NCBI GenBank assembly: GCA_000708835.1
Contig: DF237392.1
Location: forward strand, 1 to 64,000
Direction: 5' to 3'
DNA: 64,000 nucleotides
From: Klebsormidium nitens
Taxonomy: Eukaryota; Plantae; Klebsormidiophyceae
Below the pieces are notes generated by a model that saw nothing but the letters and a program-made list of their open reading frames with translations, was not told the DNA's origin and did no database searches. The translations under genes were made by a program, and so were the position numbers. Positions 36,001 through 63,548 of this stretch are shown here, in pieces; position 1 is the first letter of the stretch, and each line of letters starts with the position of its first letter.

Positions 36001-39000
36001 CCTGAAGGAATCCAAAACTCCAATGCTGTGGAAAAATTCCGTGATTTCTACCTCTTGAAATACGATACAAGTCTGACAGGCAGAAAAGAAAGCTAGAAAC
36101 CCTAGCCCTTTAGTTGCTCACCTGGTGACGATGGCGTGCTCTCCCGCCATCTCTAACCCCACGACCACCATTAACCCCCTAAAGGAGCGGTATAATCCCA
36201 ATACTTACTTTAAAACATCCGACACGCTGATCTCTTTAGGGGTCTTGTAACCCAAATCCGAAAACTCAAAACCCAAACCCAACAACCAAATCCCAAAACC
36301 CTGAGGTTAAGTTGCTCACCTGGTGACGATAGCGCGTTCTCCCGCCATCTCGCGCGCGCCGACTGCGAGCACTGTTGTGGTGACAACTGGCATGCCGATC
36401 GGGACCACCGAGACGAAGATGACGAAAGCGGTGACGACAGCATAGCCGGGGGACGCGTCCTGGGCGACCATGAGGACGACAGCAATTGCGACGACCGCGA
36501 AAAAGGAGACCACTGCCAGGGCGATGGAGACCTGGTTCAGGACCTGCGAAGAAGACAAAGTATTCACTTGTGTCCCTAATTGATAGCTTACACTTTATAT
36601 GCTCGGCGTCGGATTGCCCCATAATAGAGGAGATCGTACACCGAGAGAGATGCAGTTTACTTTTGGTTTATGTCTCCGTTCGACCGCATACTCTTTACGT
36701 AGTTGCTCGGCGCTGGAATACCCCCCAGGAGAAAAGATTCTACACACAGAAAGACTTAACTTATTGCTTTACGCTGGAGTGCCCAAAAGGAGAGAAGAAT
36801 AACGCCAAGAGATAGGACCCACGGGACTGCATCACTTGAGAATATTGGGCGCTGGAAGAACACTCGAGAAGCAAGCGACTTTAAAAGGCGGAATTCCTGC
36901 AGTGCCAAACTACTTACTGTTTGCAGATGTCCCCTTTCCTCCGGCGCTCCCAAGAGGGCGATCGTCTTTCCGAAGAACGAGTCGGCGCCCGTAGCGGTGA
37001 CTCGAGCGTCCAGCTCGCCTTGCGTCACAGTCGCACCCGCCAAAATCTGCGAGGTCAACAAACTTTTCTTTTCCAGATCCTATTTTGATAAACTCTAACT
37101 TCTTGATGAGGTTTCTGAGCAACTTTACGGCTTGAACGTGTTGTCCTAGCTGAACAACAATCGTTCTGAAACATTTTCGATACTAAACACGAGCTGTTTC
37201 ATATGAAGGAAGGAGAATCAAGAGAACTTGTACCAGGCTTCACGAGGCTGAGAACAAACCGAGATTCATTGGGAGCACAGCGAGAAAGTTAATTGCTCAA
37301 ACGACTCGAGCAGGGAGTGCTTGGACCCCAGTTACTCGGCTGAGAACGTCCAGTGAATATGGCCAGTTTACAAGGTCCAAAATCGAAGTGGAAGGCCTGA
37401 GAAGTGCCACCGAGCAATGGTGATCCCGGTCCTGGTCGCTAACTGAGATTCTCGCTTGTTTTCGTTTCATCAGAGCTTGCACGTTGTGAAGTCGGTTCAA
37501 CTAGCTGCAGCTTTCGACCTTTCCATTCGGCAGGAGCCCAAGAGCCTAGGGAAAGAGCTTGTGCAAAGATCAGAGACGCTAGCCGTGTCAATGCGAGGGC
37601 CCTTGAGAAGAGAATTTGCACACGTCTGCACGAGGTCACAGTCACTGCAGGGACCTCACGACTCATACGCCTAGTCCGCAGGCCGTACTGATGTCCCAGA
37701 TTGTGCTATGAGGAAGCACAAATCCTCGTTCGAGCCTCTCTGGGCCGTTGCATCGTCAAACCTGGTTGTTTTCAATGCTAAGTGATGGGTTCAGCATTGC
37801 AGACGCAAAGGCATCGCGTATGTGAGGCATAATTGCACATCTTGAGCGACTGGTCTGGTCTGGCAAGACTTCGGTCAGGATTGAAGCGCCTCTTTCCCAT
37901 GGAAGAGCCGAGACGAAGTCGAGCAGATGTGCGGGTGACGCTCACCTGATGTCCAGGTTTTCGTGAGGCTGGGAGGGACTCCCCAGTGAGACTGGACTCG
38001 TCGACCAGCAACGGCTCTCCTTCGCCCACCAACTGCAGTCCACGGAAGTGCGGGATTGGAAGGAAAATGCAGAAAACGAACAGGGTATGTTGGTTAGATT
38101 GTCTGCGATTATTGCGGTTAATTACTGTCTTGACAGTCTTGAAAGCTTCGTGACAGGCAATGTGGCGATTGTTTGGAAACGAAGGAATGTTGTAAGAAGC
38201 CGAAAAGCGATTGTCATCGAAAATCATTCGATCTATGTTTGGTTCAGAGACGTTATGATCCTCGTTCGCTGGGAATCCTAGAGGTTGATTGATTATTGCA
38301 CGGTTGTTTCTGACCGGTATGTTTTTTCTGTAAGTTGTGAAGGACGGCCCAATGACTACTAGAGTCTATTGTCACGAATTTCTCCAGCTTTCGAATTTAG
38401 AAAATGGTCTCTAATCATGCACGCACCTGTGCATCAGCAGGAATGACATCACCCCCTTTGAGCGCAATGATGTCGCCGGGGAGGAGCTCCCGAGCAGGCA
38501 CCTGCTGCCACTTGCCGTCTCGCTTCGCTTGGGCCATTGGCACAGTGAGGGCCTGCAAATGATTTCCGGGGGGGTGTGAGAGCCATCTTTGAAAGAATTT
38601 ATCGCACAACATTTTAGGGGCGGTGGCAGCCACCTTTTGAGTGAATGAATTCGGAAAACTTTGGGGGCTGCGAGATTCATCTTTGGGGCAGTGAAGTCGT
38701 AACCTTATGGTGGCAATGTGGAGCATCTTGGAGAGCAACAACTCAAGACTTTTTCAGGTGGTGTGTGAGAGCCACCCTTGAGAGAACGATCCAGAAAGAT
38801 TCAAGGAGGGTGAGAGCCACCTTGAGAAAATGGACTCACAACATCTTGGGGAAAATGAGAGTCATCCTTGAGCAAAGCGATTCAGCGTGCTTCATGCACT
38901 ACATGCATCTCTAAAAGCTTGCATACCAAAGGTCGTGAAATCTAGGTTAGCGATGGAGCAGGAAAGGTGTGTTGTGGCCCCAGAAGCAGGCAAAAGGAGG

Positions 39001-43131: not shown

Positions 43132-46100
43132 TCACTCCGATGCGGACCCTGCTTTTTTGTTCTGCTCGCTCGAAGTCGAAGCCGACGTTTTGAACGATGA
43201 TGACGACTCTTCCTGTTCCGAGGTTTGGTACTTCTCCTGAATGTCCTTCAAGGCCGCTTTACAAGCGCCCGCAGTGTCGTTCCTCTGCAAAAACGTTCGA
43301 CGAAATCAGGACCAACCGAGCTTTCCCGACCTAGACTATTAAGGGCTTGTTCGTGAACTGACCCTCGTAGCTTAAATACCTGTGCATGCTGCATGGTCTG
43401 CTGCAGCGTCTTTGTGCTCCTGTGAAAGGCTGTCACCATTTACAGACGAAGGATGTCGACCCCAGACCCACAGATCTACGGTCCAGATCCGAAGATCCAA
43501 GAAGCTGAAGCACAGAGCATGTTTTGTATCCCATGCTGTCTTTCTCCATGATATCGACAGGCTTGAGATTCTTGCCAGCTGTGCCAGCTTATGTCCTGTG
43601 GCCAGAACCAAGGTCTGAATCCGTACCTTGATCTTCTCCCTTGCCACGACCAGACCCGTCAAAAGTTCGAGTCGCGCGCTGGGGTCCCTGACAGTCCGCG
43701 TGACCGCTGCCTCGGCCTGGCTGATGAGCTCCTTCATTCGTTTCCCCCTGCACAGAATTGACGGCTTGTGTTTCCAGCCATGCGTGTCATGGAAGATTCA
43801 ACCGGTAAAGGAGAGACCGGGCCAAGAAAAGCAATCTTCGAACGGAGTCGGATTCTGTACTGACAATTGCACGTCCGCACCGCCCCTTCCGTTTTTGACG
43901 CCCCTTCCTCTTGCCTGAGCCTCTGAGCGGTTTGTCTAAATGGGTGTACAAGAAAGCGGATGGGAGAACGGCTTCCCCTTCCGGACTGCATTGGAAGTTC
44001 AAACTGAGCAGAAAAGTTGGCTGGATGTTCAACAAAATCTCGCGCGACGAGCAATTTATCTTGCAAGGCTCTTTCCTTTTGGCCACTCACTGCTTGTATG
44101 TCAGGTCGATGGCCTCTTCGACTATATCCATCCAGCACTCGTCGCTCTCGCCGTCGGACGGGGCGACTTTTCGCATCTTGGCTTTCCCCGCATCAGAGTC
44201 GGGGTTTGCATCAGGGGAGGAGCGCACTGCCCGCTTTCCGGGACGGCAGACTCCCAGATTGTACGAAGGGCCGGCTGAGGTTCGCTGAGTCGAAGGGCCC
44301 GCTTCAGTCGGCTTTGGCGGCATCTGTGGGGAACGATCGAGGACGTTTGCAAAGGTTTGTAACGGCTTAAAAGTAGCTTCGATGATCACTCCTTCCAACG
44401 GCACTAGCTTCCGGGCTTACTCCTTCTAGCGGAACAAAAATGGAACTTGCATACTGGATGAACCTCCCTAATCTGGCAAACAACCCTTCTTGAGACCGCA
44501 GCTCTTCTTGGGTGAAGAGCTAGCTCAGAATTTCGCTTGCAGGGCTGACAACGAGAGGCGTATTTGTCAGGGAATTTAGGCGGATTCAGTCTAGGAAAGC
44601 TATTCGAGGACCGCTTCCTTTCCCAAGCAGCTTGCACAACAGCTGCGGTGAAGAAAAACGCCCTTCTGCAATTGAAGCAATGATCCGACTGCTCCCCAGT
44701 GGCAAGCAACGTATGACATTTCAACCCGACGCTAGAGCTGCAATCAGACGGTCTCACCTCGTCGCCCTTGTCCGATTCCGTCTCCGAATCCATTGGGAAA
44801 TTTGTTGCTGGGCGACGGCCAGGTGACTTGGAAGGCTCAGCCGAGCCATTGGCTTTGTTCGCCTTGGTCGCCGTGACGCGCTCGTCTGCTGCTGCCGCTC
44901 TTTGCCCGTCCATTGCTGGAGACACCTCTCGCTTTTCCGACGGGCCTTCCTCAGACCTAGGTGGCGGGGCATTCCTCTTCGGCTGACCTTCCTTGTCAAT
45001 CTTGAGCTGCAAAAGGTTTAAAACGGCTTGCTCCGTAAGTTCAGTAGAGTATTAGCGCGTCTGTCACTCTCTCAAGGGGGTCTCTCCCTTCGTTTGTCTT
45101 CTGTTTACTGTACTGCACCATGAGAAATTTGGTCAAAGACATGGCGCAAACGGTCGTGGGAATCTGCTTCTTCCTTTAGAGCCTGTCGAGCAAGCCAACG
45201 AAAATACGAAGGAAACGCACTGACCAGACGCAGATAGTATCACGCAAACGCTGGCGAGTACTTCTCAGGAGCTTCCAAGAGCATCACCAGCTAACGCACC
45301 TTGACAAACGTTTTTAGGAAGCGATCAGGAGAAGTTACACAAGCCGATCATGCGACGGTCTGCAACGCGCGAATCAACCAGTATCGCGGCAAGCAACTTC
45401 AAGATCTGCCGCTAAAGAATAGCACGGCTCTATCATGCACCTCGATCTGCTCGTCCGTCTGCTGACCCTGGCGGAACCCCCTTTGGAGGCGCATAACCAG
45501 ACGCTGCATGCAATCAGAGAAACGTGAGTTATTCTATGAAAAATTGACTTTGGACGGAACCCACTGAGTCGGCAAGACATCCAGAAAGAGATACCTCTTG
45601 AATCCAGTGCAAGTGGGAAGATCTTAGGGAATAATGCGGAGCTGCTGAACTTCAGGTTGAATCCGCTGCTGGAATCTTGTGAACTCTAGATTGAAACATT
45701 ATAGAAAACGACATAGTTTCGAAGGCCCCGGATGAAAGAGACTCGGCGTCAGACCCTTTGAACATTTCCGGGAGAGGAGCTTAATGAGCTAGCACGCACC
45801 ATCGGGCCTGCATAGTCCCTTGCGGCCGCCGGCCCCTTCTCCATCTCGGCCGGCAGCCGCAGGATAAACCGCGCCGTGATCAGGTCCCCGTAGATCAGTT
45901 CCTGCAACTCGCTCGCCGGCTTGCGACCCGAGCAGTGCGGATACTCCGGGTTGGGAACAATCGCCATCACCGTCTTGCCGTCCAAAATCCTCGCCACGAC
46001 CCTCACGTGGCCCCTCTGGCTGTGGACCTCCCCGACGAACGGGCAGAGGTTCGCTTCGATCAGAAGCTTTGGGCCCGCCCCTAGTTGCACGAGCTCCTTC

Positions 46101-49100
46101 CGGCCGAGGTACGAGCGCTCTTCCGGCGTCAGGGCGCGCTTCCGCAGGCTCTCGGTGATCGCGCTGCGGATCTCGTCCACGTATTTGTCCTTCGGCTGGC
46201 CCTTCTTCGACGGCGCTATGCGGTTCTCGTGGTCGAGCATGTAGCTAAGAAACAAAAGGTTAAAAGGTCAGTGCGGACTGAATGTATTACTGGCGCAAGC
46301 AAAACCTTTGCTTCGTTGCAGACTGGTTTGAACGGTTGTAAAAATATAGGACCACCTCCCGTGGTCGCTGGGAAGAGGGGCGACAAAGGGTTCAAGTTGA
46401 TGCGGTCTTGCCTCACAGCGATGATGTCAGCGCAAGATGAAGCTTAACGTCATCGCAGAGACGACTGAACGATCCCGGGAAGATCCGGAGTAGAGCGCCA
46501 TGGAAGCTGAACGGTCCTGATTCCAAAATCGAAAATGGTTATACGGGCCTGGGCAGAGCGACATGAACGGACAAAACAGCAGATGAAGTCGTAAGGTTCA
46601 GAAGGGCTTGATGCCCATTGTATGTCAATTTTAGCTTTGCAATCTCTTTATCGAAAGCATCTACGAGTTGGTCGAAACACCCGCCCCTGCGCAGCCATTA
46701 TAAGTGACTCACTACTTCCGTCAGAGGATGACTTTTTATGCACTTTGAAGGCGGGGTAAGGAAGGTTTAAAGGAATTTTCAAGCTTCAAGGAACGACTGT
46801 CACTCTCGCCGTTTTGAGGAGTCCAAAAACCGGATTGAAAGCAGATTTGAGCAGTCACGTTTTTGTGGTACGTCCAGGCTGCTAACTGGTATACAGTCAA
46901 CCTGAGCGAGTCAGGAAAATGTTCCCCCTTACAGAGGGATTAATTGTGCGGCGAAGGTTACCGAAGTAGGCGCAAAACGAGGTTTCTGCCCTGAACCGGC
47001 AGCTCACCTCTCAAACTCGTCGAGGTTGAGTGGGTTCCGCGTGTTGGCGAATAGCACTTTGACGGGAAGGAAGACGACCCGATTCGCCACCCTGATGAGC
47101 TTCATCACGTCCTCGAGGCTCTGGCCCTTGGGCACGTACTCTTTGGCGATGCTCGCGAGGAGCTCCCTCCGCGCCGTTTCGACCGCCTCGGGGTCCAGCA
47201 AGTCCACCTCGCCCAGTGGAAAATCTCGGTCGACCGCGCTGAACCCCCCAAGCCTGGCACAAGAATTCAGGAGGAATTTTGTTAGCTTGGGCAGTAAGCT
47301 TAGCACACGTGTGCGTCTGCTGATGTCTGCAAACACGCAGTAGTCCGGCAGCCTTGTAAGGTCTGAAATACCGTGGAGCACTGCGTGGGACCTCTCAAAA
47401 CTCGAATTCATTCGACTGAGCTCCGCACCTCGCTTGTACTTTTGAGAGAAAGCGCAGCCATTCTTGAAGGGCGCAAGAATGACCGACAATCTGGTATCCT
47501 TGGTCACATTTGGAATGCCCCATGAATGCTGCTTTAAGCTCACATGAGTACTAGTCTTGGGCCTGACTCTAATCCAAAAATGGCCCTCAGACATTGGATT
47601 GCGGAAACGTGGCGATACAACAGCCGGAGCAATGATTACGTAGCCGGCTCAAAATGGAAATTGATCACCAATTCAAGAGAATTTCGCAAGCTCACTTGCC
47701 GACCATCTCCGATCGGAACTGACGGACGAGGATCCCGTCCTTGCAGACGGCCGTGTGGCCGGCGAACACGCCCTCGTTGATGTCCCGCCGGGAGACCTTC
47801 AGCTTCTGGCTGTGCTTCATCACCAGCGCGGCGAGCTCGTGCTTGAACTGCTCGTTGTGGATGATGTCCTGGTCCACCGGCGCGCCGCGCGCGGCCGCGA
47901 TGCGCTGCCAAACCCGCCTGTGAAAGATCTTATTAGTTTTTGAACTTCAAACCGTTGGTTCTCAGCCGGCACGGAGCGCGCGGCCACAAAGCACTAGCTT
48001 TATTGCTTTAGACGAGATTCCAGATTAAATCTTAGAGAAAATGAACCCCGAATCGAGTCTGCGGCAATGGGCTTGCGCTTGAAATGATCCACCGGCGCCC
48101 ATAAGCGGCCGCGATAAGCTGCCATAACCGCTTGTAAGAAACGGAAACTTAGCAGAACAGAAAGAGCCAGCTGTTCGAGTCGCATGCGCTGCCGCGCGCC
48201 GCGCACGCCCTCCTGTACGACAAGCGTTAGCTCTCTCGAGCATTTTCGCCTCGAAAACGGATATTTACTGCTCAAGATCGGGCAAGTGTCGCGTTTGCGC
48301 GTGCTGTTGACAGGCCCGAGAAACGGAATTTTGGAAGTATAACTCAGTCTTCCAGGATTGAACACGATAGGAAACTGCCGACCTGCTACAACAGATCCTG
48401 CTTTCTGAGCTCCCCAGCTCAGACGGTTCAGAGATTAAGCAGCTAGCATGACAGCGTGATCCTCCTTTGCAGTCGCTATGGGATTCAAATCCTACATCAT
48501 CCTTGACAAGCTCGGACGCCTTGGAGACCACGAGTGCCTTGGACACTTTCCCGGTTGGAATACACAGTCCATTTATCATTCTGAAGACATGAATATCACC
48601 AAGAAAAAGAAAAGAAAAAAGTGGAAACCTGGACTCTCAGCAATGCCTAGGAGCACTCTTCGTAGTACGAATGTATCTTACTTGTAAAGCGTTTGACACG
48701 CCTGGAGAAGGACATGTACCGACTCGGGCAGGTACAGCTTCGGCAGGCGCTTGATCCCGGGCCCGTACTGGGTCGTGCAGATGCGCCCCAGCCTCTGCAG
48801 CAGCATCTCCGCGTTGGAAGCCTCGTGCTTCATGCTGATGTAGAAGTACGCGTGCGTCAGGTGAGCGCAGTGGTAGATCGTCTTGTAGGCGTTTGCGCGG
48901 TTTGCTTTCGTGCCAGCAACGGTCCTGCGGAGCAGAAACCAGGTTGTAAGGATTCCTGGAACAGACATGATGAATCGAAAAGGAAGAATATAAAGATTGG
49001 GTGCGGCGGCTCCAGACATACATAAGGAGACCTACAAATGCGGAACTGGGTTACGGTATTGAGAATTATAAGGGTCATAGAAAGATTGTCAGAGCTTGAA

Positions 49101-52100
49101 GAAATTCATTATTCAGAAGGAACCGCCTTTAAAGAAACAATCCATCTGGTGAAGTAGCTTCGACACAGCTCTGAAAAGGCCTTGGAGATCTTGTGAGCAC
49201 TTACATCATAATCAGACCTTTGACACCTCTCTTCCAGAGAGTCGGGCTCCACATAAGTTCCCACTCCAGTTGCAGAGCGTAGCAGCGGAGATCAGCTTGA
49301 AGATGACCCTGCATAGGCGACAGTAGCTTTGTAGAGAACTCTTGCACTGTCTTAATCACGGGGAGAATCTGTGTCAGCTCTGCGGACTTCGCCAAAATTG
49401 ACTTAAGCAAGAGCATCGATATCTCATAGTTCTAGATGTACCCTCCCGCTTGATGATTTCGAAGGCTGCTGAATCGGGCCACCGATGAGAGCTTTGAAAT
49501 TCCTCCCCAAAACCTCCGCAATGAGCTCTTCATTGTTTCGACCTGCAAGCTGTCGACTCACCGGAAAAAGTAGCTCGTTCGGGTGGATGGCGAGGTGCTC
49601 TAGCTGCTTCCCTCTGATGGCGCCATTGTTCGTGAGAAGCCAGCGCTGAAGCTGTTCGGGCAACGTGCGGAACAGAGCGTCCGTCCAGACCGTCTCCTGC
49701 GAGGTCAGGTCTAGTTGCCCCTGTTCGTTTAGCCCGGGTAGCACGAAGAGGCTGGGGATGCCGGCCTTTACCAGAGTTTCCGGAAAGACGTACGTCATGG
49801 CCGTCTTGCCCGCTTCTCGCTTCCCGTTGTTGTCGATCAGGGCAATCGCGGGGACTCCCTCGCGCTCGAAGTGGTCGAGACACTCGTAAGCCACCTGGAG
49901 AGGGTAAGGAGGGCTGCATCAAAGCTTCGGCCCACGTTCCAGGCGCAAGCATGAGAAGATACGTCAATTTTCCAAGGCAAACAGACTTAAAATGTCCTTT
50001 TTCCGAAAGCAGAAGTAGCTTTTGTGTGGCCTACTGAATGAAGGACTACACTTCCAGAACCCCGTATCCGGCGCACACACACGCGCGCGAATAGTAGGAC
50101 TTTACAGCAAGACGCTTGAATGTAGAATTTTCTTTTTCGACCAACTAATGTAACAGTCACACAGTGCTGACTCTTTGAAACAAAGGTGACCAGAGAATGA
50201 AAGCGGATCCTGTATACACTCACATATTACGTACTTTTGAAACATCTACCAGATTGTCAGTGAGTATCTTCCAGTGATCTGGATACGAATCGATACGAAC
50301 GCTGATCGCCGAGCCCCACAGAGGTTAGATCTCATTTCAGCGAGACGATCCAACGGAAATAAGCGCACCTGCATATGATCGCCGTGGCGCACGCTATTCA
50401 CCACCAAACCGTGCACGTGGGAGTTAGGCGGCTGCTCCTGCGCCGCCTGGATCGCCCTGTAGTCCGTCACCATGTCTGCGATCATGCGCTTTACCGCAGG
50501 GTGTTTCTCCAGCTGAAATTTCGGTTTCGTGTTTTCGGTGACGGCAAATCTGGCGTCCACGACGAGTTCGACTTCGTGGTACTGGACCGTGGCGGGATCC
50601 GCCAGGTAGGGGAGGCCGTAGTACGTGCCGGTCTCGGGGGCCAGGAGGACCACTCGGAGAGGGCGTTCGAGGGCTGTCTGCAATGGACTGCGCATGAATG
50701 AGCTCCGATCCGATTCCGTGACGCAGGCAGGGGTCAAGAAAGTGCTACTGAAACTCTCCCTTGACTGAAAGGAGGACGTAGCGCCACATTTTGGGGAGCT
50801 ATTCTTAAGCGAGGATTTTTTGCTGCTACCATGCCGCGGCTCTTGCTCAATCTCTAGATCTATGAAGGCTTTTAACCAGTCCAGGTGAGGAACCACATGA
50901 CAGTCGTCAGCATACCGAGATTAATGTACTCAACGATGCCCCAAGGGGCTTTCTGACCCTCCGTCAGAAAAGAGTACAAACTAAATGCAGCTAAGTGGTC
51001 AAAGCCTGAAGGCATTCTTACGGTACGGAGCGTTGGAAGAATTCGAACCGATAGAAATTGGAGAAGGCTAAGCATGTTGGGACCATTCAAGCTTGAACGA
51101 TCCGTTCCGGACGAAGATTCTTTGAGGTTGCGGCTCAAAATATCACCTGGAGCCCGAGCAGGGCGAACGGAGTCGCGGTGATCCCGGCGACCGCCGCCAC
51201 GCTCTCCACCAGGGGCCGCGCGCCGTCCCGGGTCCCGCGGAAGACGCCCCGGTCGAGCGCCCCGATCATCACGCGGCCGCCTTTCTGCAGGCAGAACGAC
51301 TGCCGGCAGAGGTCCCACTCGTCGAACGTGACGGAGATGGGGTACAGAAGCTTCCCCGTTTCCTGGCTGGTTGCGCGCATCAGCTGGCGGCTCTCCAGCA
51401 GGGGGGCCATCATGGCCTCAACCAAGCCCCCCTCGAAGTCGACGGTTTTTGCGACCATGTCAGCCCGGGCGCTTCGCACGACGACTTGCTGCAGGCACAG
51501 CGGGTCGTACTCGCGGTCCTCTGGAAGGTCGCGGAGCTGCAAAAGAATCGTGTACGAGTCCAATTGGTAGTTTTGAACGATAATTGGGGCTGATAAGTTT
51601 GCACGTTCTCGCCATATTGATAGATTCGAAGACACAGCAAGCAGAATAAAATGTACAGGGGCCTTGCCTTATATCTCTCCAGGGAGGACTCGACATGCTT
51701 CCTCTCTCTTATGTGGCTGTCTGAAGGCTGTCTGAGGGCTACTCCAAATTGGACAGGCAAAAAAGCTTCCCTTTCTCAGATCTCTCAGAAAGCCTTATAA
51801 AGAAAGAGATGGCAAGATTGCATCGACAAGCGAGTATCGTCAGAAGCATGTAACAGCGCATCGATTCCCTAGCTCAAACAGTCTGAAAGAACGCTGATCG
51901 AGATCCTAAGGTTTCACTTACCATCGGTATCACGTGCAGATTCCTGACGGGTATTGCCTCAAATATCGAGGTCGATGCGGGAGTCAAGGTGAGACCCAGG
52001 CCAGGTGCGGTCAAGAGCGCTCTGACGTCTTTGTTGACGTCCTCGAGCGCCGTCCAGATATTGTACCGGCTCTGAATGATGTTCCTGGCCATCGTGTAGT

Positions 52101-53443
52101 AGACGGGCAGCTGGCCGAAGATGAACCGGAGTGCCCAAACAGACTGGGCAGCAATGCGGGTCTTCCGGACTTGCATCAGTCCAAACGTCAGGCTCGAAGA
52201 ACCAGCCGCAATGTGTGACAGCTGCAAGGTCGAACAAATCCCGTCAGAATTTATATAATGACATCTCAGGCAAGTCATGAATGCAAGCTTTCTGCCAATC
52301 TGTTCCGAAACTCCCGAGTCCTGTGATCTTTCTCCCGCAAAAGCAGAGGAGAACCAGCTGATGTAAACAGCGTCGAGTTTGAATTGAAGCCATCCTTGCA
52401 AGTAAGCTCGTTTTTGTGCAGATACGGGGTAATCGTTGTTAGACCGGGGTCAATGCGGTTCATACAAAACGAACTTTGGTCGTCTGCAAGCGACTAGACG
52501 AAAGAAGTCAAAAGACCTAAAGTTCTGGTGAAGAAAGATGAGAGCGTGCGGACTGAGTGCTCACCTGCTCTGCCAGAGGCACGTTCGTGTTCACATACTT
52601 GTGAGTCACGATCCGGAGGCAGCAGCGCAGCAGGAATGGCCAGTAAGCGGGGACGTATCTGCAGATGCAGCGGTCCCCCTTGCAGTCCTCCTCAGCAACT
52701 TTCATGATCACGGCAGGGTTTCCCGAGACTTCAGGAACCACGCCTCGCTGAGGCAGGGCACAGAGGGGCATGACCGAGACCCTGTTGGTTTTCAGAGCCG
52801 GAACGAGGCTTCTCGTTACCGCACGCGCCACAAGAAATTTGCTGCCAGCTTCTGCGTGCCGGCTCTCCGTCGTCCATCCGCAGACCTTCGCTTGGTCGGA
52901 GCTGTCAAAGGCCGCGGGCGCTTTCTCGGCAGCGAGGCGGTTGCGGAGCTCGACGAACTGCTGGTGAACGGAGCTCGGGGGAGTCATGAGCTTATCATAC
53001 CCGCGCCTGAGCTTCTCAAGGACGCTCTGCAGCTTGATGAAGTCCATCGCTCCTCCGCTGTTCATGCACCCTTGCGCCTCGGCAGTCGACTCACTCGCGA
53101 TGGCGTTGGCCTGAGCTCTTATGTTTATCAGCCAGCGCTCAGCCAACATAACTTTCGGCTCTTCGATTGCGACACGAAAGGAAGTGGAGCGGGGAGCGCG
53201 CACCGTTTCCTCTTCGACAGGGTGGTCTGCCGGGCCATGTTCCTCATCTAACGGCGCTTCTCCACCTTGAGCCTTACTCTGAGGGAGAATGACCGTTGGT
53301 TCGATGAGCCGCCTCACGAGTTCAGCCCCATTTGCCAGCGAGCCCTCTGTAGACCCTGACTCCTTGGCGACTTTGGTCCCAAAGACGTGCTCCATGCTTG
53401 CGCGCGGTGCCCCTGCACGTGCAGAAATTGACTGATTAATCAT
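43132..53443 (-). CDS. Z1-domain-like superfamily-2 helicase/ATPase with N- and C-terminal extensions (roughly 1,400 aa, ~13-15 exons)
   Basis: Exons 53443(or 53395)-52565, 52221-51922 (TFGLMQVRKT, Walker A position), 51536-51147 (ISVTFDEWD, Walker B; AGITATPFA, motif III), 50677-50369 (VVLLAPETGTYYG; HGLVVNSVRH), 49894-~49543 (PAIALIDNNG), 48924-48682 (VAGTKANRA..LTHAYF..AEMLLQRLGR..YGPGIKRLPKLYLPE), then ~47913, ~47255, ~46245, ~45007, ~44323, ~43748 and ~43287 to TGA at 43132. Junction phases were consistent except around 49543-48924 and 48682-47913, which are unresolved. Start codon uncertain. Confidence 0.75.
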
Positions 53444-61700: not shown

Positions 61701-63548
61701 TTCAATTCGTAGACGTAACGTTCCGCGGCTCATCTCCTCGGTGTTCCATCTGAAGAAAGAGAAAAGGATGGAAACATGACAAGATACATAATCATGGACG
61801 TCCATTTCCTCAATTCCTTGCACAAAGAGGTCGTCCGCGACCTTTCCAGGCTGCCAAAGGGTCAACCTGTTGAAACAGGCTGATCCATGTCCACCCCTGT
61901 GCTTAGTGCTGCCATTCTGCTGGGTTTCCCTGGCTTTTTGTCATTGCCAAAAACCGGGACCCGGCCCGGCCAAACGAGCGCACGAACCAGCTTACAAGAT
62001 CTATAAATCCAATGATGCGAAAGGCGAGAGGCAGTGAGAATTTTGGAAAATACAAAAATTGTTCGCAAAAGAAAGAACAGGCGTGGCACAACTTTGTATG
62101 AGAAACGGCATAACTCTTTCCCAAGAATACCTCTCTCTGGATCCCAAGGCCCCAAAGAATTCGCTTGCCCTCATTCAGAATCCAACACTTTCTGCTTGCC
62201 TCCCCTTCCACTGCCTCCGGTGCTTCCCTCTCCACCGATCAGATTATCGTACCACAAACAACACTAGCCATCTGAAAGCACTCAACTGGATGTCACCTTG
62301 GCCTTCCAAATCTCGCGCTCGTCGTTTTACCAGACAGGGAAGATCTACCACAGACAACAGCCAGACAATTGCAAAGAAGCATTTGACACTCACTTTGGCC
62401 TTCCGGATCTCCTGCTCTAGTCCGCTCATCTCCGCCCCCATCTTGGCCGCCTTCTCCCGCTCCTCCTCAAGCGCCGCTTTCAGCGTCCCCTTGTCCTTGA
62501 TCAGCTCCTCGAACTTGCTCCGCAACTTCACGTTCCGCGCATCCACCTCCGCCTTCTCCCGCGCCCGCAACTCTTTTTCCGTTTTCAGCTCCGACTCGAC
62601 GCGCATCTTCGCTTGCTCCTCTTCCTTCAGCTTCTGCTCCGAATCGTACAGCTTCTCCTTCAGCTCGTCCAGCTGACGCTCTGCTGACGTCACCCTCTCC
62701 CGGAGCGACTTGGCCTCGTCGGCGTTGCGGTGGAGTGACGTCATCTCGGCCTCGGCGACCGCGAGCTTGCCCTCGGCGTCCTCGCGGCGGCCCTTCTCGG
62801 CGGCCAGCTCGTCGGAGAGCCGTTTCACACTGCCCTCGAACTCCAACAGCCTGTCACAGAACGGGTTGTGTCAAAAATACGGGATTGGAGGCTTGTTCCG
62901 ACAATCTCCCTTGGACCTCTTAGCGGCCATTCTTCAAAGGGCTCCGCCGACCGAACAGGCTGCACGGGATGTGTTACTGCAGAATCGCACTTTCGAGATC
63001 AGGAATTAGCTCCTGGATGCACCCGCGGAATGATACAAACACCGGAGCAGAAGAAACTGCCATCATGTTGCGCACGAAGGGGACGATGCTCTCGAGGCCC
63101 CTATCTTGGGTGCTTAATACGTGCTGCGCTTGGGCGCTTACTTCAGATCTTGCTGCTTGAACGTTTCCCTCAGCTTCTCCGCCTCCCCCCGCGCCTCCGC
63201 CACCTTAGCCTCCATCTCCGACAGCTCCATCGCCGCGCGGACGTTCCGCCGCTCTAGTTCGTCCCTCGCCTTCTCCCCCAACCCCTGCGCAGCCTCCCGC
63301 TGCCTCTTCTCCTCCGCAAAATTTCGTCTCGCCTCGTCTCGCTGCCTCACCGCTTCTTGCACGGTCGCTTTCATTCTCGCAAACGCGGTGTCGGACTCAA
63401 GCTTTGCTGTCTCTGCTTCGGCTTTCACTTTGAGAGCAGCTTCCTTTTCGGACTGGAGCGTAGCCTGGGCGGCTTCGGCGGCTTGACGAGCCTCTTTCTC
63501 TGCGGCGATCTGGCTGCCGGCACGCTTCAAAGCGTTTTCGAGGTCGTT
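58741..63548 (-). CDS. Long coiled-coil (myosin-tail-like) protein, 3' exons; 5' part not resolved and probably extends beyond the window
   Basis: In-phase exons 63548-63142, 62850-62394, 61458-61178, 59976-59697 and 59112-58741 (TAA) encode E/A/K/R-rich heptads. The C-terminus ERAAELRQRAEEMAQQL..WDDCMPW resembles plant coiled-coil proteins ending in a C-x-P-W motif. Confidence 0.85.
60780..61100 (-). repeat. Three degenerate copies of the exon end/donor of exon 61458-61178 in the following intron
   Basis: cctcacctgagcc..gcgctctc..cgcggctgc at ~60787, cacctaagccccgcgctc at ~60927 and ctcagtcccgcgctctcc at ~61053, versus the real site at 61172. Confidence 0.75.

Follow-up and report, generated by a model that had tools for sequence, protein, structure and literature searches.

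In a 64,000-nucleotide (nt) stretch of the Klebsormidium nitens genome (contig DF237392.1, positions 1 to 64,000; hereafter the window), a minus-strand gene within positions 43132-53443 carries motifs that resemble those of the bacterial Z1-domain helicases of superfamily 2 (SF2). We put at about two in three the probability that the locus, a transcribed nuclear gene with introns, encodes a very divergent SF2 helicase-like ATPase of the DEAD-Z1 superfamily, a reading that draws on spliced transcripts and on the order of motifs in the predicted protein. The gene is not filed under Pfam Z1; our reading places it, highly diverged, in the wider superfamily.

Transcribed exons and motif sites

Three K. 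nitens RNA runs yielded contigs at the locus, two of which are spliced in the minus-strand gene, joining 51922 to 51536 and 50369 to 49894. The introns that they skip, at 51537-51921 (385 nt, run X3) and 49895-50368 (474 nt, run X2), are both GT..AG, in phase 0 and on the minus strand, and link the sole frames open on either side. Because both junctions are in frame, the gene is real, transcribed and read in the frames proposed by the first-pass annotation, which had been made from the sequence alone; at least exons A-B and C-D are part of spliced in-frame transcripts. Contig depth at the locus is 2-5, corresponding to very low expression. The run X2 contig continues unspliced beyond its junction to 49729, past an alternative donor at 49772.

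The exons that we letter A, B, C, D and F are consecutive and stay open over at least 636 codons; all coordinates given for them and their motifs are on the minus strand. Exon A (51922-52221) has an RNA-verified 3´ end and a predicted acceptor at 52221, with the frame open to 52449. It holds the start of the N-core, the Walker-A-like motif I GLMQVRKT (52182-52159) and a motif-Ia-like stretch. Exon B (51147-51536), whose start is RNA-verified and whose predicted donor is CAG/GTGATA after 51147, carries the Walker B motif II DEWD (51323-51312), 157 amino acids (aa) beyond the P-loop-like site, and motif III GITATPFA (51185-51162), with TATPFA 48 aa further on. Exon C (50369-50764; 3´ end RNA-verified, acceptor at 50764 or 50677) provides the Y-motif-like LLAPETGTYYG (~50647-50615; PETGTYYGL at 50638-50612) and the motif-IV-like HVHGLVVNS (50419-50393). 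The NG block IALIDNN (49846-49826; IALIDNNGK at 49846-49820) lies in exon D (49562-49894), which has an RNA-verified start and a predicted donor CCG/GTGAGT after 49562. Exon F (48682-49031), with a predicted acceptor TAG/G at 49031 and a predicted donor AA/GTAAGA after 48682, encodes motif V VAGTKANRA (48920-48894), the HLT..YF strand (LTHAYF at 48860-48843; HLTHAYF at 48863-48843), motif VI MLLQRLGR (48806-48783; LLQRLGR at 48803-48783) and the tail PGIKRLPKLYL (48761-48729). All of the motifs quoted in the annotation were found on the minus strand in open frames, with coordinates agreeing within 0-3 nt.

Two further candidate sites in exon D were rejected. The P-loop-like GKREAGKT (49825-49802) overlaps the NG block, and since it comes later than motifs II-IV in the RNA-verified exon order and sits at the family's N-G hairpin, it was discarded as a true Walker A or as part of a second ATPase. 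A hydrophobic strand lies ahead of it and a motif-Ia-like stretch behind it, and its match to a P-loop is probably coincidental. The stretch QRWLLTNNGAIRGKQ (~49600-49650, minus strand), considered as a ricin-B QxW repeat, matched the mistletoe lectin B chain at E ~1, which is chance level.

Ordered motifs shared with bacterial and giant-virus proteins, the proposed relatives

The similarity was measured with an ordered-block chain test, in which 11 ungapped position-specific scoring matrix blocks per family (I, Ia, II, III, Y, IV, NG, V, Va, VI and VIa) were chained by dynamic programming under loose gap limits. Three profiles were used: bacterial Z1 and two families, X and Y, from giant viruses (nucleocytoplasmic large DNA viruses, NCLDVs). 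The algal protein scored 72.9 (X), 59.3 (Y) and 57.4 (Z1) bits, its best score being for family X, and 53.1, 48.2 and 39.6 bits when block III was left out. For comparison, true cross-family scores were 67 and 59 for Z1 proteins on the NCLDV blocks and 65.5 for family X on the Z1 blocks. None of 150-200 residue shuffles reached the algal score (z 5.2-5.9, or 3.3-3.9 without block III), nor did any of 228 unrelated long decoy open reading frames (ORFs), many of which carry a chance TATPFA. Other open frames of the window were used to build 6000 composition-matched pseudo-proteins, none of which reached the score with any profile; without block III, 1, 0 and 0 did so. The summed three-profile score was 189.6 against a null maximum of 110.9. 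We quote empirical counts because a Gumbel fit to the null, which we discarded, was too heavy-tailed, predicting 6-12 exceedances per 6000 where 0-1 were seen.

The order of the blocks also mattered for family X, for which no permuted order among 400 reached the score of the real one (2 of 400 without block III). Twelve generic SF2 helicases with G-x-TATPFA scored 43, 29 and 35 on the X, Y and Z1 blocks, with maxima of 53, 45 and 55, and the algal protein exceeded all 12, on the X and Y blocks with or without block III. Judged by its motif blocks, the algal protein behaves like a cross-family member and not like a generic SF2 helicase.

The sites chosen for motifs I, II and III were identical in all three profiles; for V, HLT..YF and VI the two NCLDV profiles agreed as well. 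The chosen sites are those of the first-pass annotation, where at least two profiles place each block 1st-7th among ~620 positions. Blocks II and III come first in all three, with block III contributing 18-20 bits, and the P-loop block (2.7-3.5 bits) ranks second in all three. The exon C blocks, Y and IV, rank 2-7; here SHVHGLVVNSVRH fits only the first His of the H-x-S-M-L-V-H strand (3.6-5 bits). For the HLT..YF block the three profiles give 14.1, 8.7 and 6.1 bits, and on the NCLDV ones it ranks first and second; the PG...L-K-L-Y-L tail block scores 9 bits.

Characterised DEAD-Z1 motors translocate along double-stranded DNA in an ATP-driven manner and thereby license a partner nuclease. Four features define them: Gln within Walker A, the QxxR form of motif VI, an extended loop following motif II, and a C-core that has both an H/H motif and a helical insertion (Toliusis et al. 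2018, PMC5861437). Scanning viral contigs for QMGRWFGY gathered genuine Z1 proteins of ~900 aa from 26 loci, of which the five tested match Pfam Z1 (PF10593; gathering score 25 bits) at E 1e-74 to 1e-86, with 250-287 bits. These proteins match PADLOC MzaC at E ~1e-190, identifying Z1 helicases with the MzaC component of the Mza anti-phage system, to which the annotation had linked them. The Z1 consensus that it gave was likewise accurate: the genuine proteins read GxVQSGKT, LLIDDEADNAS, YVGYTATPFAN, LxAPSNYxG, SMLVH, IAVGGxKLSRG, VSYF and LLQMGRWFGYRPGYxDLCRxY. Together with 20 database relatives, they make up our Z1 profile.

With the bacterial DEAD-Z1 proteins (H.CglI/NgoAVII, MzaC and PF10593), the algal protein shares the motif order I, Ia, II, III, Y, IV, NG, V, VI, the family-specific Gln in its Walker-A-like site, TATPFA, a YF strand past motif V and a PG-x3-L-x-[KR]-h-Y-L tail past motif VI. 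Spacing in the N-core is similar: by our reading the I-II, II-III, III-Y and Y-IV distances match those of Z1 within ~7 aa, and the bacterial Walker B D-[DE]-x-D falls ~150 aa past Walker A, with TATPFA ~40 aa on, against 157 and 48 aa in the alga. The algal protein differs in being ~50 residues longer between motifs IV and V, its N- and C-terminal regions are unrelated, similarity at the level of a hidden Markov model (HMM) is absent, and the gene is nuclear with spliceosomal introns. Taken exon by exon, hhalign against Z1 chose the collinear region for exon B (through TATPFA, P 8.5e-4) and weakly for exon F (P 0.23).

A scan of viral contigs for G-x-TATPFA uncovered family X, NCLDV helicases of ~450 aa with 163 database clusters and no Pfam or PADLOC match. 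Its loci lie in giant-virus metagenome-assembled genomes (GVMAG contigs; L033:2691-4034 on the plus strand, L040, L060, L063, L110, L116, L124 and L141-L173), with a Pox_A22 resolvase and PCNA among the gene neighbours. Family X carries G-H-V-Q-S-G-K-T, D-E-V-D, G-A-T-A-T-P-[FV]-A-L, N-Y-x-G, L-H-T-V and Y-N-G-D-G, followed toward the C-terminus by G-H-L-A-S-R-G-I-S-F...H-L-T-D-Q-Y and L-L-Q-S-L-R (QxxR). It aligns with Z1 at an hhalign probability of 80.5%, and its AlphaFold2 model (mean predicted local distance difference test score, pLDDT, 90.6) has a double-RecA SF2 fold whose nearest named folds are Pfam-Z1 clusters, at template modelling (TM) scores of 0.72-0.75 versus 0.63 for ResIII, and also a Z1-domain endonuclease. 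Among viruses, its best matches come from Heterosigma akashiwo virus 01 and Chrysochromulina ericina virus (CeV-01B). Family X is a genuine Z1 relative. Its sister, family Y (~450-770 aa; L169:2794-4761 on the plus strand, and proteins P0246-P0365), is longer and more diverse, with an S-A-T-type motif III; the L169 protein carries a low-complexity VPK-repeat insert. The family-Y HMM finds every full-length bacterial Z1 protein of the test set (20/24) at 9-17 bits. A narrower pattern, G-[LMF]-TATPFA, occurs in viral contigs L041, L042, L046, L047, L088, L094, L099, L104, L106, L128 and L129.

The family-X HMM matches the algal protein weakly, at E 2e-5 to 2e-4 (Z=1), through no more than two short collinear domains, TATPFAL and motifs V-VI of exon F. 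When the same model was run over 2033 six-frame segments of the window, exon F came first (E 0.51, in the collinear position) and exon B third. By hhalign against the NCLDV family, exon B gave P 1e-4 with a probability of 57% and exon F gave P 0.019. From motif V through the HLT..Y strand there is an ungapped 27-residue match to family X, in which the NCLDV block G-x-L-A-[SG]-R-G-I-S-F-V-S-x-D-Y-x-x-H-L-T-D-Q aligns with A-G-T-K-A-N-R-A-N-A-Y-K-T-I-Y-H-C-A-H-L-T-H-A. The algal protein further shares the TATP[FV]AL motif III, the G-T-Y-x-G form of the Y motif (as in L169) and the N-G hairpin with families X and Y, whereas the NCLDV proteins have a perfect GHVQSGKT, keep QxxR, are intronless and have an N-terminus at least 200 residues shorter. 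By its motif V-HLT block the algal protein lies somewhat nearer the giant-virus branch; in the PG...L-K-L-Y-L tail and the NG block it resembles bacterial Z1.

Two eukaryotic AlphaFold DB entries, L1ILU5 (768 aa, TM 0.64) and A0A7S4HJ72 (726 aa, TM 0.56), are neighbours of the family-X model. They are likened to that model only, by structure, and both are uncharacterised; from its accession style, we take L1ILU5 to be a Guillardia theta protein. Eukaryote-encoded, uncharacterised proteins with a predicted family-X-like fold are therefore already in the databases. To our knowledge, DEAD-Z1 motors have been described in bacterial restriction and Mza-type anti-phage systems and nowhere else. Our full-text searches of the literature on the Z1 domain, DEAD-Z1 and PF10593 returned bacterial work only and no description of a eukaryotic member, in keeping with the annotation's remark that no characterised one was known.

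Points against the assignment and rival explanations

A considerable body of results weighs against placing the algal gene in the DEAD-Z1 superfamily. Per-exon searches gave no Z1, ResIII, DEAD, Helicase_C or SNF2 match in Pfam up to E 1, and none in PADLOC (MzaC/Helicase_II), NCBIfam or PDB sequences. Against the spliced model, the Z1 profile aligned only A-V-A-G-I-T-A-T-P-F-A (E 0.017 at Z=1, -1.2 bits), hhalign gave a probability of 5.7%, and the family-Y HMM found no match. A superfamily HMM scored the algal protein at 8.7 bits versus 8.0 for a decoy bearing TATPFA by chance. Once TATPFA was removed, the N-terminal half stood at z 0.4-0.7 relative to shuffles and the C-terminal half at z 1.6-2.6. 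For exon A the best alignment was to Z1 motifs V-VI, and GKREAGKT drew exon D to the Walker A/Ia region (P 0.026), so that at this depth of similarity motif-spotting is ambiguous. The P-loop GLMQVRKT keeps G, Q, K and T, but V and R occupy the positions of the invariant S and G. Motif VI (Q-R-L-G-R) has the canonical SF2 spacing QxxxR, not the QxxR of Z1, its block scoring -4.2 bits on the Z1 profile and 0.2-4.1 bits on the NCLDV profiles. We devised the chain statistic ourselves and picked its blocks, all of them conserved motifs of the families, with the annotation's motif list known; for that reason we discount the test somewhat. On bacterial Z1 blocks, 7 of 400 permuted orders reached the real one, a count that rose to 54 of 400 (not significant) without block III, and the margin over the best generic SF2 control is narrow. 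Finally, the intron-split ORF proposed in the annotation is confirmed by RNA at two introns, and its junctions 5´ of exon A, between B and C, between D and F, and beyond F are placed from splice-site context only. The proposed Z1-helicase homology was thus borne out in motif order and in the chain statistic, but not in Pfam, PADLOC or NCBIfam matches, in the S and G of the P-loop or in the QxxR of motif VI.

Other searches were less telling. Global hhalign scores and hmmalign counts of conserved residues were uninformative for the algal protein, a single-exon search of the ESM Atlas found nothing, and exons B and D detected no related loci among the viral contigs. A phmmer search with exon C against 1.84 billion cluster representatives gave five matches, all of them repeat or immunoglobulin artefacts; as exon C has no true relative there, this gene and its close orthologues are missing from that library. 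One metagenome match (L027:8-793, plus strand), a soil ORF of the FGE-sulfatase/SUMF1 type, was rejected as a chance sharing of the octapeptide TFDEWDLC with exon B.

The locus could be an SF2 helicase-like gene of a non-Z1 lineage, an offshoot of ResIII, UvsW or SNF2-like proteins, whose Z1 appearance reflects motifs common to restriction-type SF2 motors. The viral-contig scan found G-x-TATPFA in ResIII+Helicase_C and UvsW-like phage helicases as well, and since it recurs there as motif III, TATPFA alone is unusable as a Z1 marker. These phage helicases (L041, L042, L094 and the UvsW-like L088) share DExD, TATPFA and a QxxGR motif VI with the algal protein, which also has the canonical QxxxR spacing; without block III, L088 scores 40.9 on the Z1 blocks to the algal 39.6, and the superfamily HMM places the algal protein among generic helicases. 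But they match Pfam ResIII, DEAD and Helicase_C strongly, unlike every algal exon at E 1, and they score lower on all NCLDV-type blocks, where the algal protein outscored the whole set of generic controls. Three blocks of the algal protein are lineage-specific, namely those with the Z1-type Gln in Walker A, with the HLT..YF strand (14 bits) and with the PG...L-K-L-Y-L tail (9 bits). We regard a non-Z1 origin as unlikely. A chance resemblance, in which a lineage-specific orphan gene without a helicase fold has one strong TATPFA and several weak look-alikes, seems to us a little less credible again. Standard tools detect only TATPFA, and an 18-bit block is expected many times in the six-frame translation of a large genome; exon A fits Z1 motifs V-VI about as well as exon F does, exon D fits the Walker A region, family-X blocks give even the reversed sequence a fairly high score (52.7/47.2), and exon C has no relative among the 1.84 billion representatives. 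Against chance stand a collinear score above all 6000 nulls, the 228 decoys and every shuffle with three independent profiles, of which family Y has a different motif III, together with the superiority of the real block order over 400/400 permutations for family X and the Z1-like spacings from motif I to IV.

A third alternative keeps the superfamily assignment and holds that the protein is catalytically dead or decaying, whether as a domesticated scaffold or as a young pseudogene that an old insertion of viral or bacterial DNA left behind. It overlaps our preferred explanation and differs from it only over surviving activity. In its favour are the replaced Ser and Gly of the P-loop, the very low RNA abundance, the extreme divergence from all known relatives and the lack of orthologues in the database search. 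However, at least five exons remain open over at least 636 codons with good splice sites and two in-frame spliced junctions, and the protein retains Walker B D-E-x-D, motif III and the arginines of motifs V and VI. We consider an inactive homologue possible, though clearly the less probable outcome. That same long open frame, with its good splice sites and its two introns removed in frame, disfavours outright decay.

Possible function, outer exons and surroundings

If the gene does belong to the DEAD-Z1 superfamily, the protein would begin with ~290 N-terminal residues in which no domain is recognisable. Exons A-B would then supply an N-core RecA domain, with a Q-type Walker A, the Walker B DEWD and motif III TATPFA, and a Z1-type C-core would be formed from exons C-F, with the Y motif, the motif-IV strand, the NG hairpin, motif V, the HLT..YF strand, motif VI and the PG tail; further exons may lie downstream. 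By analogy with H.CglI, the SF2 double-RecA core might bind and move along double-stranded DNA. Because the P-loop lacks the invariant Ser and Gly, the ATPase is likely reduced or altered, as might suit a switch, a scaffold or a decaying gene. Loss of these residues could leave an ATPase that is weakened, altered or lost altogether, and the product may be a DNA-binding, translocase-derived protein and not a textbook motor.

A viral or bacterial origin is plausible, since a giant-virus Z1-like branch exists in viruses of algae, and the occurrence of NCLDV relatives in viruses that infect algae means that a route into the algal genome exists. A role in defence or chromatin is speculation. In a fuller scenario, which we hold to be doubtful, the alga would have domesticated a DEAD-Z1 motor from a giant virus or bacterium, adding introns and new terminal domains, for nuclear anti-virus or transposon defence or chromatin surveillance, perhaps within a small gene family of this genome, with the remodelled P-loop acting as a switch and not as part of a processive motor. 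The first-pass annotation had pointed to MORC, DUF4420, AIPR and methylase partners; no MutL/MORC, DUF4420, AIPR, methylase or R-subunit domain was found among the long ORFs of the 64-kb window. Bacterial operon logic is inapplicable to a eukaryotic nucleus when partner genes are judged. If the assignment is true, a spliced and expressed algal homologue would be another prokaryotic or viral immune component that has moved into the eukaryotic nucleus. Such transfers would have a concrete route in the giant-virus branch, which occurs widely in NCLDV metagenomes and escapes both Pfam and PADLOC. The case also bears on method, as the algal homology would lie below the reach of single-sequence HMMER and HH-suite searches.

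The outer parts of the gene are candidates. A putative first coding exon (52565-53443, minus strand; ATG at 53443, ~293 aa) lies in a frame open over 53470-52520 and has a strong phase-0 donor candidate, GTGAGC, after 52565, predicted from splice-site context to join to 52221; no RNA contig, recognisable domain or Pfam match was found for it. A further, possibly last, coding exon could be the 214-aa open frame at 47004-47648 (minus strand), which ends in a stop and is only a candidate for membership; it has no Pfam, PADLOC or NCBIfam match, and its single-sequence AlphaFold2 model, with a pLDDT of 36, is uninformative. Between 43.0 and 48.9 kb, RNA coverage consists of one unspliced contig, at 44760-44978 with depth 5. 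This contig covers part of a charged, low-complexity open frame of 215 aa, which could represent either a gene of its own or a 3´ exon.

The window has an even base composition throughout, and no transposon-like terminal repeats were found flanking the gene. Elsewhere in the window, a 200-aa open frame at 62244-62846 (minus strand) has a weak tropomyosin-like, coiled-coil Pfam match (E 1e-4, under the gathering score). Three diverged direct copies of a 35-nt unit, at spacings of 189 and 90 nt, lie at 38563-38876 (plus strand), ~4 kb downstream of the 43132-53443 span.

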